In this document: positions 8,601 to 49,420 of the stretch, piece after piece
Layout: each line of letters opens with the position of its first letter
How positions within the stretch are numbered: the first letter of the stretch is position 1
Assembly: GCF_963853765.1 (NCBI RefSeq)
Contig: NC_088855.1
Span: forward strand, 36,704,001-36,768,000
From: Magallana gigas
Lineage: Eukaryota
Length of the DNA stretch: 64,000 nt
Reading direction: 5' to 3'
The notes under the pieces: generated by a model
The model's input: the letters and a program-made list of their open reading frames with translations, nothing else
What the model was told of the DNA's origin: nothing
The model's database searches: none
Position numbers and translations under genes: made by a program

Positions 8601-11600
8601 TGTAGACAAATCCCCCTATGGTTATAACAGCAATAGCGATCAATTTTGCTGCTGTGAAGAAATTCTGTACCTTTGTTGCCAGCTTCACACTGTAGCAATT
8701 GATAGTTGATACAAACACTGAAAAAGATGAGAAAAAATTATGGTATTAAAAATTATTTGCCCAGTGGGAAAACGATATATACCGGTAGATACATTTTAAA
8801 CTTTAATTTTTCTCTATGGTACACTGTACCCAGAGTAAAACTTTCACTTACAAAGACACACGATGGAGACGATTTTGACAAGTACATCAGGGGGTCCACA
8901 CTCAAAGAAAGGCTCAGTGGTGTACAAAGCAAAGCTCATGGATACCACCCCAAATAATGCAGGCTTTAGGATCAGAACAGAGGTCCAGGCAAACAGAAAG
9001 GCAGGAATGGGGCCCAGGGTCTTATGGAATGGTCCAAAGGCCTCGTGAAGATACGCATATTCTGCTCCAGACTTGGTAATCAATGTGCCAAGCTCTGCAT
9101 AGGACAAGGCCCCTGGAAAATAGAAGACTGCAAATGAAAAATCTTAGACTTCATATCTAATATATAATATCTATGTAGGTTTTCTTTAAGGTTTTTTTTT
9201 TTTTGTAAAGTGAGAATACGAAGTGTTTTAATCAAATTAGAAAACAATGCCTACACCGCTAGTTAGTGTGAGTGCATTATATGCTAATACTTACTTTTTT
9301 TGAATGAATCTACTTTGATACATGGTTTATTTTTGCATTTGATACGTGTAAGCTTTTAGAAAGTCATAAACAAAATACATTCCGAAATAAAACAGATTCA
9401 TAGCATATGTTTCAATATACTTCTATAGTGTGTGTGAAAGTAAAAGGATTGGAAAAATCTTGTTGGTTTTCTTTTTTCTTAATGAATATAAAACTACATG
9501 TTTATTACGTGAGTTAGACTAAAAAATAAAAGGCCGTGTAACAGAACAGAATGTGACATTGAAAATAGAATGCTTGAGACTGAGTGATATTAGCACAGTG
9601 GGAGTTATAGGACTGTTCCATGACCAAAGTCCATGCGGAGGGCATCCTGGCACATGGTTCAAGTTCTCCTACAGCCAAAACAAGGGCTTGTCATTGTAGT
9701 CTCTCCAATATGCGAGCATATTGTTGTGTGGAGGACTAAATGGCAAGCTGCCTAACAAGTTAACTGGTCTCCTGAAAAATTCAGTCTCTTTAAATTTTGA
9801 TAAGGATATGCATCTTGATTACATTTATAAAACTGCATCTTTTAGAAAAAAATTCTAAATCTGGAATTGTTTTCTGTTAGTTTATTTTTATTTTTCACAA
9901 ATAAAAAGTTCTGATTTACCAATCTATTCTAGATTCTTTTCTTGATATCAATAAATCTTTGAATGTTTTGATTCGAAATTTCAAACTAAAAATCATTTAT
10001 ATTACTTAATTTCAAATTCTAAGTATGACAGCATTGTATATTTCTGTTTTCCAATTTTGTCTGACATTTCCCAGGAGAGTTAACAAATGAAACCATATGC
10101 GTCACTCCAAGATGTCCGGGAGGATATATATGGCTTCTCTAGAAAATTTCAAGCTAATGTGCCATGGATGTCTCTCCGTGAAGGCCTTTCTGGAACCAGC
10201 CCTTCCTGGAACATAATTCATCACATTTCATATTTCTCAATCAAACATTAACAACATGTCGGCAATCGGATGTCGGCATAGCCTCTGCTTTCCCCATCAT
10301 CTGCTGCTTTACAAGGAACTGTTCCAGAAAGTTTTCTGTGGAGGATTAACTGGCCTACTTAAACCTTAGCAAAAAAAAGGTTTTTAAAAGGAAATAGACC
10401 AGGGGGAATAAAGTTTGAGGTGACATTTTTGTCTCTCCAAGATGTCCGGGAGGGCAAAATGGCACCTATACTCCTATGCTTATGGATGGTATCAAGACTG
10501 AAGCTGATGAAGAAGAAAATGGATAGTGAGGATGATAAAACACAATTTGGTTTTTTGATATGTACATAAAGGACAACAGTCCTTCAGAAACATGGCTTTA
10601 ATGATGTTTTACTGACAAAATGAAGAGCAGATCATACTCTGCAATTATGACATCATCAGCCTCAGTTCGGGCAAGCTTGTAAAATGTGCCAGAGGGTCTC
10701 TCCAACCAGAACCAATGGAGGGCTAACTGGCACTAATGTATGTCACCTATATCAGCCGAGTGCTGCAGTGTCTCTCCACGCACACAGGAGGGCAAGACAG
10801 CACCTGCCAAGCACAAGGGAAGTGCTTAGTCTGATAATCATGTTCATAATCATTATCACAAGAATCTTCTAAATTTTAATTCCCTTATGAACTTCTGAAT
10901 ATAAAATGCAATTTCCCTTCTCTGTAACAATATTTTTTTTATTATCTAAAATAAATGGCCTTATTTATAGGTTCAGCCATGAACATGATTATCAAACAAT
11001 ACACAAAGTGACAGAATGATCAGTTTCCACAGTTTAAAATTCTCTGTTCATGTGTGATAGGTTAAGGAATTTTGATTCATGACCGAATGATTTTGGTTTT
11101 AGTGATGGTGTAAAAGGGTGTGAACTTTCAAATATTCCTTGAATTTCTTTTCAAAAACATTGAGCAAGCAAACAATTTTTCATTCAACATTCCCCAACCC
11201 CCCTAAAACACACACCTACGTAAACAAACATCAAATGTATTAATAAGTAAACAGGCTATCTACTGTCGCATACTCTGTTATTGACAAAAAGATTAAATGA
11301 CAAACAGCAACATAATCTCTCAGGATTAAAACTATCATGCACACAGTGGAAAAAAATCAATCTACATGTTCAAAGCTCGTACAGCAAAAGCCGAGATTGC
11401 ATTCTAATTTTTTTTTTTTCAATCAAGGCTTTGTGATTTCTCTAAAAATTGTATCTATAATTTAAGCTGTCTGGTTTTCAATGCAGTGATCTGTTTTAGT
11501 GACAAAGAATGCATTCAAGCTATCATACTCCTCTACAGATTTTAATGGAAGCACAATGATTCTTAGAAAAAGGATAACATTTTTAAAAAGTTCTTAAGAA

Positions 11601-42955: not shown

Positions 42956-45900
42956 ATGGAGAAACTTGTGCTGAGATCCTGCATCAAATGCCAGTCATTA
43001 AGGTTCTTCTCCTCACCTACTCAACTTTCTACTCATTGGGTCCACACAACCGCATCCTTGAGACAGAAGGCTGGCAGTGGCAAGGTTGGAGGCTGGAGGA
43101 GGATCAGACGTGGTCTGCTCTATGGAATCGGTGGTGCTACAGCCTCTGGTGGTATTCTGTATGCTATAGCAGATGAACCCCAAAGGCGCAAAGTACGGGT
43201 GCTTCTAGGAGGAATTAAAAGATTTTTTAGGTTAGAAATAAATCTACCAGGTAGATTTTGATTGTATACTAGCTGGTACATTTAGATGGGTTTTTGTGAA
43301 GGAAAATTTTAATGTTTTTCAATGAATTTAAAGTATTGGTATATATCAAAGTCTAAATGTAAAATATGCAATGGTGATTATAATTTTGTGGTAGAAATTT
43401 GAGTTGTTATACAATTTAACAATTTTAGCTTACAGGTACCTTGCAGCACATAATTTCAAACTATAAAATATATATATTATATAGTCACCAGGCAGTATCT
43501 ATCTCATCAAAATGCTGTAAGAATATATGCTAATTAAACTCTAGGAAATTATTCCTTTACCATATAGTAATGTAGATAATATTTTATGATTTTCAGGTCA
43601 CTTAAAATAGGAACACTGATTTCTCTTGATTACAAATATAACTTATGGGGCATAGCAGAAGACTCCGAAGAGTATAATGAATTAATAAAGCCTTGTCATA
43701 AGAGAGCGGCCGAGCGTCTACTTGAAGGATGTTTAGCAAATGGAGGCCTTTATGTAAAACTTGGACAAGGACTGGTGTCCATGAACCACATACTGCCCAG
43801 GGAATACCTGGAAACTCTGGTAGTTCTACAAGACAGAGCTCTTCCAAAGAAACCTCATGATGTGAGTTGCATATAGAGGATTAACAAATTTTGAACATCC
43901 TGTAACCCTTTGACTTAAGAATTAATTTGCTGCGCACATCTTCCAATTTTATAAGATTAACTTTTACATTCTCTCATTGTTTTGATCATATTAAACTAGT
44001 CAGACAAAACATAAAATTCCTCTAATAGATTTTCTATCTCTTTGTAAGAATTCATTTTTTTAAAAACTGTTTGTGAAGTGTCTGTGTCAGGAAAGAGATT
44101 TTTAATACTTTAAGTGGAGGAGTCAGACCTGATAGAGATAAAATTCTAATGAGATGAAACGTAGTACTGGTAGTCTGACATGAGCATGTTCTGAAAAAAG
44201 AAATAATTACTTCAAGTGGAGTGTCTGATATAATTTCAGATAGAGCAGCTATTTCAAGAGGACTTTGGAAAACAACCTCAGGAATTTTTCAAGAAATTTG
44301 AAGAGGAGCCAATAGCGGCTGCCAGTCTAGCTCAGGTTCACAGAGCAGAGACTCATGATGGACAGCAAGTGGCTGTCAAGGTTGGTTGATTAATCTTACC
44401 AAGCTTGAAACAAAATAAAAGGCTGATAGTAAACCAGTGTTGAAAATTATAGCAAAAGTGTTCCAAAAATGATTCAGTTACATTGTTTTCCCTTACATCA
44501 GTCATGAAGATAAGGAAAAAATAGATTTTTGTTTTTATTCTGGTAATTTGCCTTGTAGTATTTTTTTGTGACTATATGCTTTATTACATATATTTCACAG
44601 TACGGTACATTTAATATTTTGAACATGAGCACCATGACTTATAAACGAATTGAAAATGTGTAATATTCTGTGAAATACAGGTTCAGTACATAGACCTACA
44701 GGACCGGTTTGCTGGTGATGTCTGGACCTGTGAACAGCTGTTGAAGTTGATTGGTTGGATGCATCCAAAGTTTGCATTTGCCTGGGTTTTGCAGGTTATT
44801 AAGTTTTCAGTTAAAAATAAATTTTACAGTAATATAATTACTGGTTAAAAAGTTGGTAATTCAGTCTTATGCATGTATTTTTCTTTCCTACAGGACTTAA
44901 AAGATACCTTAGTTCAGGAGTTAGACTTTGTGAATGAAGGAAAAAATTCTGAGAGATGTCAGAGCGATTTAAGCCATCTTAAATATGTATATGTGCCAAA
45001 AGTTCACTGGGACAAGACCTCAACTGTACGTACAAATGATTTACAAATTTGGTTTATTGAAATTAAGGTTACCATTTTCTTCTCATCTGCTAATCTATTA
45101 TAATTTCTGTCCATCCTTTTCTCTGCTTTGCTTTTGACCATCTTAATGTTTGGTCCATGATATCATCCTTTCACATCCATTCACCTCTATATATAGTGTC
45201 AGTAAAAGAAAACAAGTGTTTGATCTGTTGGATTTGTTATTTTCAGAGGGTGCTAACTGCAGAATTCATTGATGGGTGCAAGATTAGCAACAAAGATGCC
45301 ATAAAAAAAATGGGGCTTTCATTGTATGATGTAAGTTATTGAAAGATATACCGGTACTTATAACTAGTACTGTAATTAATTAATGCTATAGGTTAGCAGC
45401 AATGTACCCCATCTTTCTCCTGAACTAAAATAACCAGAGATTAAACTACATGTATGTAAAGAATGCAGATCTGTGCATGATAAAGTGTAATTCATGAGTA
45501 GGTTGCCTTATACAAATGTGTGTACAAAATGATTCCAGAATTTTGTTTTCTGTAGGTTGACCAGAAGCTATGCCGGGCGTTTGCCGATCAGATTTTCCTG
45601 TCTGGCTTTGTACACGCAGATCCACATCCAGGAAATGGTAAAAAAGTGTTAACAAATATATTAGTCATCCATTATTCTAATTACAAAAGCTCACTTTCAT
45701 TTTAATATGCCTTTGCTCTAATTATAAGAAATGTTAGTAAAACTTAGAACACAACTTACACAAGTGGAATTTTCCAGTATTGAGACATATTGTTGTCTTT
45801 AATGATGTTAAAAAAAATGTAGTAGTTTAATATTATTTTAATATACACACTCAACTGATATTTTTTCTTTCTTTTTTTTTTAGCAAGTTAAGAAAGCAGT

Positions 45901-48900
45901 GTTTCCTCTTTTTAATTGGGATGCTCAATTTTGACACTACCCTGTATTAAACAAAATATTACTCAAATTCTATAAGTGCCTTGAATTCTTTTTTGTATCC
46001 TTTACAGTGTTTATCAGAAAGGATGTGAAAGGTCAAGCCCAGCTAGTGTTATTGGACCATGGTCTGTACGACAAACTGACACAAGATGATAGACAGTCCC
46101 TGTGTAGTCTGTACAAGGCCATCGTACTCAACAAGGAAGACAACATGCAGAAATTCTCCAAGGCCCTAGGAGTGGATGGTAAATGATAGCTAGGGACAAA
46201 AAGGGCTGGACTATTTCAGATCAAATATCTTTGGGGTTTTCTTATGGGGGTAGGGGTGGATGGGTTTCTGTTTGAGAGTAGAGCGTAGTAGCACATACAT
46301 GTATTGTAAAGTGATAATACAGGGATGGTTTTGGTTGGGTGGTCAAGTACAAAAGCCCCAAAACATTACTGACACATCACAGAGACTGCTGTCTCTATAC
46401 ATGTTATGGGTTTTGGATTACACATATTCTTAAATTTATTGTTTGTTTATATAATTGTAATACATGTATTCATGAAGAATCTGTAATACACTGTAAATGT
46501 GTAATACACGGTATATGACTATTTGATGTACCGGTACAATTGCAAGTTAAGCTCTTACTGATAAATAATGGTATGGTATTACATGTATATGGTAATTGTT
46601 GTAAATATTGTTAATGCAATGTCAGAGAAAATCTTTACTTTTTGTTATAAATATTTCTTGCTTTTGATATACTTTGATATACTATAATTGATGGATGAAG
46701 GGAAACCTTTAGCTTGAAAATCTTATTTTGGCACTACAAGGGAAATAACTTGGGTGAATAGGTTTAGCCAGTGACATACATGCAAATGTATTTTCCTATA
46801 TTCAGTACAATATACAATGTATCTGCAATGTTTGAATATGATAATATATTCTTACTAAGTATATATTCATATGTATTTACCATTTATTTCTGCTTGTTAA
46901 AATATACCATATTTCATTTCAGATCATGGAAAAAATTAAACCACACTTTTACACATGATGAGGCGTACCATCCATCATAAACTAACTTCAATTCTGTTTA
47001 CTTTTATTAGACTACCAGGTATTCTGTCTCCTCACCAAACAAGGTCGGGTGCAGTTTGACAAGGCCCCTCCTTTATTTCGACACAAAATTTTGTCCAAGA
47101 AGGAATATTACGAGCTCTCTCCCGAAGTCAAGGCTGAGTGGCTGGAGGATTACCATGCTCTGCATGAGCGAATCCGTCTAGTGTTAAGACAGATGCCTAC
47201 TGGTCTTTTCTTTATTTTTAGGTATTAAACCATAAAAAAACTCTTCTTCCTGTATAATCCGTAAAATGCCAGATTGAAGTTAACTTACTGTATACAGCTT
47301 TAAATCTTTGCCATCTTTTTTAATTTAAAACTTTTGTTAATTCATGAATTACATCCCTTAAAATTTGAATTTTTTGAGTTTTGAACAACATGTATTTGAA
47401 TTTAAAGACGTTTTTTAAAAAAAAATTTAAGTGCAGTATTATATTAACAAGTGTAATTAATGTACCATCTAAAATGGTAATTGCAATATAAGTAAAGTTG
47501 TATATAGTATTTTATATGTTGATTAAAATCACAATTTTAGTGTGTGTGGTTTTGCAATGCTGTAAATGTGGGATTAAAATTAAAAGATGTAGACTGTATT
47601 CATGGATATTTCCAAGTGCTGTTAATCAAAGGAATCCAAAATGAAAACAATTACCATATACAGGGAGATTATTTATACCTTAATTTACCGGTAGTGCTAT
47701 TTAAATAAATAGCCTCGTGCAGAGTATACCATGTTTATAGTTTGTTAATTAATTTGTTTGTTTTAATTTTAACATATCATTTTAGTTTTTATGCTCATGC
47801 ATGCAAATTAGTAAGCTACCTGGTATAGGTCTCATATCAAACCAGATTTACAGCAATGCAAATACGAAAAATTTTTCTCACTGGTATAATGAAATAAGCA
47901 TTTTTTAAAAATAAGTTTTCATTAAAAGTTTCAGGTCTGCTTGGCGGAATTGCAGAGTTTATTTATTTTAATTAATTAGAGCAAGGACATTAAATTGGAA
48001 ATTATAGTTCATGAATGATGGATTTCAATGCTGTATGTTTTAGATCACGATGTATTTTGTGAAATTCTGGTCCAGCGTCCTGTTAGTAGGTCGTCTACTT
48101 ATTTGCCAAGTCACATGACCAAAGAAGATCTCAAACATATGCAATATATGGCACAGAAACATTTTGATAAAATCATGCAAGTCTTAAAAGATATGCCCAG
48201 GCCTATCATACTTATAATTAGGTTAGTTTTTACACTTGTCTGCTTCTGCAAATTTTGCCCCATTTTGCTGAATGCTTATTTCGTTATATGAAGAGAAATT
48301 TCACTTGCATTAAAAATCTGCCAGTTGTGTGTTGTTTCACATTTCTTTATGCTGCTTGATCTGTATTCTAGGTTATCTGAATTTGCTCATTTTAATTATA
48401 TATAAAAGTAAAACATAATCTTTAAACTCTACCTAAGATATGAGAGCCAACATATTGTAAAATCCACAAATATAATGAATTTATAAGATTTACCATAAAA
48501 AAATTACTTTAAAAATATTTTATCCAATATGCTTTCAAACTATTATTGTTTATGTATTTTATCCAACATCCTATATTCCTAATATATCTTGAATATTTAT
48601 AGGAATATGAACACCATCAGGGCAATTTGTCAAGAACATGGTAATCTCATAGACAGATATGGGATTATGGCAAAAAGGTAAATTTTAGATTCAGCTGCAT
48701 TTTTACTTGTTGCCCTGGTATTTTTTTTAATAAAAACTTACTAAACAAAGAAATTTCAATTGGGTCCAACAATGGATTTTACTATGCAATTGAAAATAAA
48801 CCGAACATATTATCAGACCACTGTTAAAACAATAGTACTGGTATACAGTTCTATGTATCAGATAGCAGATCAACTTGTTGTTTAGAGACACTTAAATGTT

Positions 48901-49282
48901 TTGGATTTATCAGCATTCTTTATTAGATGATTACATGTACATTAAAATGGTAACATTGATGTGTTCAGAAAAAATTTCACTAGGATATCACTGATTTATT
49001 TTTTTCAGTGCCATACGAGGGGCACGGAAATTTGGTATACAGGATATCTCTTGGACGGGGAGGATCAAGGCTTGGCTAGAGATGATGAATTATGATTTCC
49101 GCATAAAAGCTGAAAACTTCAAAATATGGATAGGGATTGTTTATTTGCGTATTCTTGTTTGGTTAGGGAGAGTGCCATCTTTAGAAGAAATTCGATCAGT
49201 CATAGAAAAGGAACAGAAAAGGTATGAGTTCAGCAATAGTCCAAAAAATATAGATAATTTAAATATTAAAGTAAAGATATAA
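42956..49282 (+). CDS. ADCK5: aarF domain-containing kinase 5 (UbiB/ABC1 family), 11 coding exons per isoform; 596 aa (exon 9b) or 607 aa (exon 9a)
   Basis: Exons 42956-43230, 43597-43861, 44240-44380, 44681-44794, 44894-45025, 45247-45330, 45556-45637, 46008-46178, [47011-47221 or 48044-48221], 48603-48677, 49009-49282. Motifs [46 protein letters not shown]. Probable non-coding exon ending at 42214 with acceptor at 42918. Confidence 0.93.
47011..47221 (+). CDS. ADCK5: ADCK5 alternative exon 9a (divergent duplicate)
   Basis: 211 nt, no stop, TTTTATTAG|...AG|GTATT, phase 1 to 2; DYQVFCLL...[10 protein letters not shown]. Confidence 0.8.
48044..48221 (+). CDS. ADCK5: ADCK5 alternative exon 9b (canonical-like)
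   Basis: 178 nt, TTTTAG|...AG|GTTAG, phase 1 to 2; [14 protein letters not shown]...[10 protein letters not shown] resembles vertebrate ADCK5 as I recall it. Confidence 0.9.
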
Positions 49283-49290
49283 GATAGTTC

Positions 49291-49296
49291 AATAAA
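49291..49296 (+). terminator. AATAAA 9 nt after the ADCK5 stop
   Basis: Seen directly; usage unproven. Confidence 0.4.
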
Positions 49297-49301
49297 AATG
49301 C

Positions 49302-49420
49302 TAGCTGCAATAATGTAGCCCTCTTCAATTTTTTATATCTGATGTTTACTGGAGAGATGCTTACTCTCCCCCCCCCCCCCCCAAAAAAAAAATCGGGAGA
49401 GGGCTACATTATTGCAGCTA
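49302..49420. mobile_element. 119-bp MITE with perfect 23-bp TIRs and a near-perfect 9-bp TSD
   Basis: TAGCTGCAATAATGTAGCCCTCT / AGAGGGCTACATTATTGCAGCTA; flanks taaaaatgc and taaaaatgt. Confidence 0.85.

Follow-up and report, generated by a model that had tools for sequence, protein, structure and literature searches.

The DNA analyzed here is a stretch of 64,000 nucleotides (nt) from contig NC_088855.1 of Magallana gigas, which we call the window. It is AT-rich eukaryotic DNA and contains an ADCK5-like gene of the UbiB/ABC1 family, coding for a kinase-like protein of mitochondria. The ninth exon slot of this gene is doubled: It is filled by two exons, 9a and 9b. An earlier reading of the window, made from its letters and open frames (the sequence-only reading), had proposed that they are duplicated, mutually exclusive exons in the kinase C-lobe. 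In the RNA contigs that we have analyzed, both exons are found spliced into the gene, and they are never joined to each other.

An ADCK5-like gene with a doubled exon slot

The features of the locus are listed in Table 1. Exons 1 to 6 are a model built from open frames and GT/AG sites, RNA joints cover exons 7 to 11. The gene is a member of the UbiB/ABC1 kinase-like family, as the sequence-only reading had claimed. The Pfam profile ABC1 (PF03109) matches exons 3, 5, 6, 7 and 8 collinearly, and the KxGQ, catalytic-loop and DFG-like motifs of UbiB proteins can be read directly from the translated exons. The choice of ADCK5 rather than ADCK1 as a label is our assumption, made by likeness to the human ADCK5 sequence. 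Exon 8 takes the ABC1 match up to profile position 242 of 244. Therefore exon 9 codes for the segment that follows immediately on the ABC1 domain and belongs to the C-lobe, which is where the exon pair had been placed; this segment also lies downstream of the HxDxxxxN and DHG motifs. At least two further ABC1 loci are present in the genome. Exons 9a and 9b are each found in a single copy, so that 9a has not been borrowed from a paralogue.

Table 1. Features of the ADCK5-like locus (positions in the window)
Feature	Coordinates	Strand	Remarks
ADCK5-like (UbiB/ABC1 family) gene	42956-49282	+	eleven exon slots plus the doubled slot 9; frame-consistent GT/AG model
Exon 1	42956-43230	+	modelled
Exon 2	43597-43861	+	modelled; KxGQ-type motif YVKLGQG
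Exon 3	44240-44380	+	modelled; ABC1 profile positions 13-61
Exon 4	44681-44794	+	modelled
Exon 5	44894-45025	+	modelled; ABC1 profile positions 96-142
Exon 6	45247-45330	+	modelled; ABC1 profile positions 137-172
Exon 7	45556-45637	+	HADPHPGN catalytic-loop-like motif; ABC1 profile positions 171-197; joint 45637-46008 in four runs
Exon 8, constitutive	46008-46178	+	LLDHG (DFG-like); ABC1 profile positions 201-242 of 244; ends in phase 1
Exon 9a, derived copy	47011-47221	+	211 nt, 71 codons including split codons, phase 1 to 2
Exon 9b, ancestral-type copy	48044-48221	+	178 nt, 60 codons, phase 1 to 2
Exon 10, constitutive	48603-48677	+	acceptor for 9a (joint with 47221, four runs) and for 9b (joint with 48221, X36)
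Exon 11	49009-49282	+	stop codon in the frame of the window; joint 48677-49009 in three runs
Stem B, arm 1	47885-47902	+	9a-9b intron, about 142 nt upstream of 9b; pairs with 48271-48288
Stem B, arm 2	48271-48288	+	50 nt beyond 9b; pairs with 47885-47902
Stem A, arm 1 (candidate, weaker)	46584-46600	+	17 nt, fully complementary to 47646-47662
Stem A, arm 2 (candidate, weaker)	47646-47662	+	the two arms together flank 9a

Exon 8, whose last base is a G at 46178, provides the donor to which 9a and 9b are spliced; exon 10 starts with a G at 48603. The acceptor of 9a ends in ttattAG and its donor begins with GTattaa, the corresponding sites of 9b are ttttAG and GTtagt. Each exon is open solely in the frame which enters in phase 1 and leaves in phase 2, coding for peptides of 71 (9a) and 60 (9b) residues. 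The coordinates, phases and open frames of the sequence-only reading are thus right, and the shared peptide ends to which it pointed are seen in the translations. Both exon lengths equal 1 modulo 3. With either 9a or 9b alone the reading frame is kept, as had been predicted. If both are included the frame is shifted, and a stop codon appears five codons into 9b; the last junction (exon 10 to exon 11) lies 234 nt farther downstream. If neither is included the frame is also shifted, and the third codon of exon 10 becomes a stop, 67 nt ahead of that junction. By the usual rule, which asks for a distance of over 50 nt between the stop and the last junction, both of these products would be expected to be targets of nonsense-mediated decay (NMD).

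The RNA evidence consists of contigs of four public runs (X9, X27, X36 and X37, which come from four studies with four organism labels), mapped to positions 45500-49400. Exon 9a is complete in many small assemblies of public runs. The joints which connect it with exon 8 (46178-47011) and with exon 10 (47221-48603) are found in all four runs, and a contig of 1229 nt from X27 contains exons 7-8-9a-10-11 unbroken. Exon 9b is connected in two of the runs. Its joint with exon 8 (46178-48044) is found in X9, and at this place X36 has a loose end whose letters are those of the adjoining exon; its joint with exon 10 (48221-48603) is found in X36, and here it is X9 that has a loose end of the same kind. 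All four junctions that the sequence-only reading predicted are thus present in RNA contigs. The contigs of the four runs contain neither a 9a-9b joint (47221-48044) nor a joint of exon 8 with exon 10, which agrees with mutually exclusive use. Contigs lose rare variants, and a low level of double inclusion or skipping may still exist.

Depth over 9b is zero in X27 and X37. In X9 and X36, some joints have short sides of 26-29 nt, as expected where a 31-mer graph branches; short sides of this type fit the presence of both forms in these two runs. The joints are spliced at GT..AG sites of a single-copy locus, so their source cannot be genomic DNA. Exon 9a is a major form and not a relic.

At the other end of the gene, RNA contigs of three or four runs show five common differences from the window at 49123-49223, in exon 11, four of them at third codon positions. 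The contigs part from the window after about 49209-49223, beside a GT at 49222, and the 3' sequences with which they continue beyond exon 11 do not match anywhere in the genome assembly. A diverged allele could be the explanation, or a terminal exon that is missing.

Homology, distribution and selection

A direct BLASTP comparison of 9a with 9b gives no significant match. Global alignment gives a z-score of 6.3, and none of 2000 shuffles scores as high. When profiles of 9a orthologues and 9b orthologues are compared with hhalign, residues 2-71 of 9a are aligned with residues 2-60 of 9b, with a probability of 91% and an E-value of 9.2e-7; the identity in this profile-profile alignment is about 22%, and 9a has an insertion of 11 residues. 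A hidden Markov model (HMM) of 9a matches the 9b exons of five other species (E from 1e-5 to 3e-4), and a 9b query matches the 9a exon of one relative, L006 (E 3.5e-4). When all exon-9 peptides are placed in a tree, a branch with 99/96 support separates 9a from 9b, a split which is compatible with one duplication. Judged by these comparisons, 9a and 9b are old duplicates, that is, distant homologues. The sequence-only reading had described 9a as a duplicate which is 11 residues longer, strongly diverged and free of stop codons, and this description holds.

The two segments appear to have a common plan. In low-confidence AlphaFold2 models of the isolated peptides, both have a short helix, a long loop, a long helix and a short terminal helix, in this order. 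The first helix and a terminal MP..L..I(I/F)R motif are common to 9a and 9b. Each exon also has motifs of its own which are invariant across lineages: K.GP.K and PP.FR in 9a (K.GP.K...PP.FR), FCEIL.QRP and HFD in 9b. This pattern would fit a conserved scaffold with an exchanged surface. A Foldseek search of the peptide models against AFDB Swiss-Prot gives nothing meaningful, and a PDB sequence search gives no match with which exon 9 could be mapped onto the COQ8A structure. The matches in PDB of the exon profiles and of exon 8, to a MIT-domain protein, eL28 and leucine-rich repeats, have been rejected as chance matches. The eL28 case comes from 47049-47150, a basic stretch in the middle of 9a, whose profile matches this ribosomal protein weakly (E 0.003), probably a chance likeness of basic helices.

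When 1.84 billion representative proteins are searched with 9a, two open reading frame fragments are found, on genomic contigs of other animals; none of these proteins is an annotated full-length protein with 9a. Automated genome annotations may already list both isoforms. Profile searches with 9a give further matches. We have fetched the contigs of relatives (labelled here with L and a number) and mapped the exons of the window on them. The order of exons 7, 8, 9a and 9b, followed by exons 10 and 11 where the contig reaches them, is kept. The pair is found with intact sites in L001, L002, L004-L007 and L013-L016, at least ten contigs from at least three lineages, and further 9a open frames are present in P0028, P0030 and P0031. 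In the close relatives L013 and L014, 9a is 89-92% identical to that of the window; another close relative, L008, is represented by a short contig with 9a only. A distant group, formed by L001, L002, L004-L007 and L015, has 48-54% identity in 9a and 55-65% in 9b. A third lineage is found in L016, with P0031 as its second species: The 9a-like exon is 27-30% identical and 9b is 62% identical.

All orthologous 9a exons have 211 nt, no stop codons, and AG and GT sites. Within the distant group, the ratio of nonsynonymous to synonymous substitution rates (dN/dS) is 0.07 for 9a, 0.07 for 9b and 0.09 for exon 8, values obtained at dS above 1. Between the window and L008, dN is 0.025 and dS is 0.20. 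These comparisons point to an exon pair which is kept under strong purifying selection in several distant lineages. The sequence-only reading had named absent 9a junctions together with broken orthologous 9a exons as the outcome that would speak against it, and we find the opposite: The junctions exist, and the orthologues are intact and under purifying selection.

Two other species, known from metagenome contigs of the Joint Genome Institute (L009/L010 and L011/L012), have exon 8 followed by a 9b-type exon, with an intron of 642 nt in one of them. No 9a-like frame is found anywhere in them. Since the only type present in species without 9a is 9b, 9b is the ancestral or general type and 9a a lineage-restricted addition. 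The 9b exons of L009-L012 are 75% identical to that of the window; in their exons 7 and 10 the identity is lower, about 60%.

Pairings in the introns around 9a and 9b

Two ways of enforcing exclusive use may be discarded. No U12-type sites (AT-AC or GTATCCTT) are found, all sites are GT-AG in a U2-like context, and the intron between 9a and 9b has 822 nt. Spliceosome incompatibility and steric hindrance are therefore excluded.

The introns of the window cannot be aligned with those of L013/L014. Over 1.2 kb of intron, the mean identity of segments of 18 nt is 8.2/18, and the third-best segment has 13 identical positions. Only two islands are conserved, 47886-47903 (18/18) and 48272-48289 (16/18), and they are complementary to each other. 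The stem which they would form, stem B, has 17-18 base pairs and encloses 9b with both of its splice sites. Stem B closes the minimum free energy (MFE) and centroid folds in both species. RNAalifold finds 17 consecutive pairs of this stem in all three sequences, with one U-A pair changed to U.G and one outer pair changed on both sides. The arm of stem B is unique in the genome, and an Rfam search of the region gives no family. Stem B is a well-supported candidate regulator, and we consider the other pairings described below as leads.

Stem A, which would flank 9a, is one of these leads: None of 300 shuffles reaches a complement of 17 nt. An RNA contig of X9 has a deletion of 6 nt beside its upstream arm. 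In L013 there is a second pairing, of intron 8 with the box of the middle intron that takes part in stem B (free energy -42.7, not reached in 200 shuffles). In the window, the pairing of intron 8 with this hub is not significant, with 19 of 200 shuffles reaching it. The distant group presents a mixed picture, and no stems above chance are found in the species without 9a. L004 contains long inverted repeats, 9376-9532 with 14828-14985 (about 157 nt, flanking 9a) and 10395-10457 with 19159-19220 (about 62 nt, flanking 9b), located in the same pairs of introns as the short stems of the window. The long inverted repeats of L004 and L015 look repeat-derived and we have rejected them as regulatory stems.

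The 24 nt before the 9a acceptor (46970-46993) are 75% complementary to the 24 nt before the 9b acceptor (48000-48023), with a core formed by AUCCAUCAU and AUGAUGGAU. At the aligned positions L013 has UCCUUU and AAAGGA, as read by eye, which would be compensatory.

Explanations and comparison with known systems

The explanation that we prefer is that exon 9 was duplicated in tandem long ago, and that the use of one copy or the other gives two full-length proteins, which differ solely in a segment of 60 or 71 residues after the ABC1 domain. We give it a probability of about 0.8. Wrong exon combinations would be cleared by NMD, and the choice between 9a and 9b may be biased by intronic RNA pairing. 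When stem B is formed, 9b would be hidden and the 9a donor drawn toward the exon 10 acceptor, so that 9a would be favoured. In L013, where the box in the middle intron may pair with intron 8 instead, 9a would be looped out, and the two pairings could act as a competing switch. In the protein, the first helix and the MP..L..I(I/F)R helix would hold the fold, while the swapped loop and long helix would alter the surface of the C-lobe and may change its interaction with a partner or a lipid.

Several points weigh against this explanation or parts of it. For three of the four runs it is a guess that they are RNA, and the contigs tell which forms are present but not their amounts, tissues or conditions. 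The sides of the 9b junctions are only 28-29 nt long, besides the loose ends. The AlphaFold2 models of the isolated peptides have a predicted local distance difference test (pLDDT) score of only 63-66. As regards the stems, the support for stem B comes from no more than two independent lineages, one being the window and the other L013/L014, with a single change in its core that is compatible with pairing, and in the window alone it is not exceptional when compared with shuffles (z-score 1.9). In L008, a close relative, the upstream arm of stem A has not been kept, L001 and L002 have no flanking stems above chance, and the long inverted repeats of L004 and L015 may be transposon copies.

These findings on the stems leave room for a simpler account of exclusivity, in which frame incompatibility, NMD and competition between splice sites are sufficient, and the conserved boxes serve another purpose, for example as protein-binding enhancers, or are due to chance. 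The premature stop which results from using both exons or neither would be enough in principle, and the modest score of stem B in the window, the lack of significant stems in L001 and L002 and the loss of stem A in L008 all favour this account. On the other hand, the two best-conserved segments of the introns are exactly the complementary arms, the sole change in the core keeps the pair, and stem B is used in the MFE and centroid folds of both species. We consider an account without pairing possible, if on balance doubtful. Another alternative accepts the two proteins and takes them as interchangeable, the pair being kept by neutral subfunctionalisation of its expression in different tissues or stages. 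The distribution among runs, 9a only in X27 and X37 and both forms in X9 and X36, would agree with it. Nevertheless, each copy has kept its own invariant motifs throughout the lineages, and the insertion of 11 residues in 9a likewise speaks for structural constraints that are particular to each copy; we think that interchangeable isoforms are unlikely.

The remaining alternatives concern the nature of 9a itself. It might be an unrelated sequence turned exon, whose ends have converged to fit the fold and the splice sites, and this would explain why pairwise BLASTP is not significant, all the more so since the first and last residues are partly set by the splice consensus. Convergence of the ends alone does not agree with a profile-profile match which is full-length and forms one collinear piece, with HMM matches from 9a to 9b in several species and from a 9b query to the 9a of L006, or with identical phases and the same predicted layout of helices, so we regard such an origin as very improbable. 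Finally, 9a could be a decaying or unproductive duplicate, a relic or a poison exon included by splicing noise. The low identity between 9a and 9b, and the low identity of the 9a of the third lineage (L016 and P0031) to the others, are what decay would produce. However, this idea is already contradicted by the data and we give it hardly any credit: 9a is used in all four runs and is the sole form in the contigs of two of them, it is intact in at least ten other genome contigs, with a fixed length and splice sites, its dN/dS is on a par with that of the constitutive exon 8, and 9a alone keeps the reading frame.

ADCK5 is one of the UbiB proteins about which least is known, and a structure of it has not been reported (PMC12193262). 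In the literature that we have searched there is no ADCK5 with such an exon pair, the only events described are a retained intron and an alternative 3' site, in rodents. Pairs of this kind are familiar from other genes: Mutually exclusive exons that arose by tandem duplication have been well described, and so has the way in which competing pairings between introns control them (PMC6071210, PMC4691838, PMC7797038). The pair amounts to a natural experiment, in which two versions of one segment of the C-lobe have been kept long enough to saturate synonymous sites, the remainder of the protein being common to both. The isoform with 9a may be neofunctionalised, as the sequence-only reading had suggested. 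The pair points to a surface with a specific function, and provides two natural variants for comparing ATPase activity, lipid or quinone binding and partners.

The UbiB family includes COQ8A/B, yeast Cqd1 and Cqd2/Mcp2, and human ADCK1/5 (PMC8346625, PMC12193262), and the gene in the window resembles them in its ABC1 domain, coded by exons 3-8, and in the motifs YVKLGQG, HADPHPGN and LLDHG. Yeast Cqd2, a putative counterpart of ADCK1/5, affects the distribution of coenzyme Q (PMC8346625). A parallel in terms of exons is found in coq-2, a mitochondrial quinone-related gene, whose mutually exclusive homologous exons 6a and 6e switch the substrate between ubiquinone and rhodoquinone, as has been shown genetically; this switch is found only in animals which make rhodoquinone, molluscs among them (PMC7434440). 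As in our case, one copy is ancestral-like and the other lineage-restricted. UbiA-family loci are present in the genome of the window.

The coq-2 switch of molluscs and the role of Cqd2 make a quinone-related role of the isoforms an attractive hypothesis. In parallel with the a/e switch of coq-2, the choice between 9a and 9b might adapt an ADCK1/5-type protein to two quinone pools, ubiquinone and rhodoquinone, in facultatively anaerobic molluscs. We consider this distinctly unlikely at present: Function is proven in the case of coq-2, while a link between ADCK5 and quinones in animals is speculation. If it were true, 9a would mark an isoform specific for rhodoquinone or hypoxia, and the stem around 9b would be a regulatory handle. 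If the distribution of 9a were found to follow the lineages which make rhodoquinone, an ADCK1/5-type protein would be tied to quinone handling in animals.

As regards the control of splicing, the stem around 9b may be a simple case, with two exons, of exclusivity controlled by RNA structure outside insects and mammals. The docking-site and selector systems of insects, such as those of Dscam1 and 14-3-3 zeta (PMC4691838, PMC6071210), also have conserved complementary boxes in introns next to tandem-duplicated exons. Here there are only two exons, and the stem encloses an exon, which would be looped out, instead of activating the exon adjacent to a selector. A similar arrangement is that of exons 7a and 7b of mammalian ATE1 (PMC7797038), two tandem homologous exons which are used one at a time, where a box in the middle intron has two alternative partners, one before the first exon and one after the second. 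The full arrangement is found in L013, whereas only the downstream pairing, stem B, is conserved in the window. Our case differs from ATE1 in the gene and in the phylum, and the pairing around 9a and 9b is a prediction from sequence. It also differs in that the lengths of 9a and 9b are not the same: The difference of 33 nt stands beside a frame rule which also enforces exclusivity.

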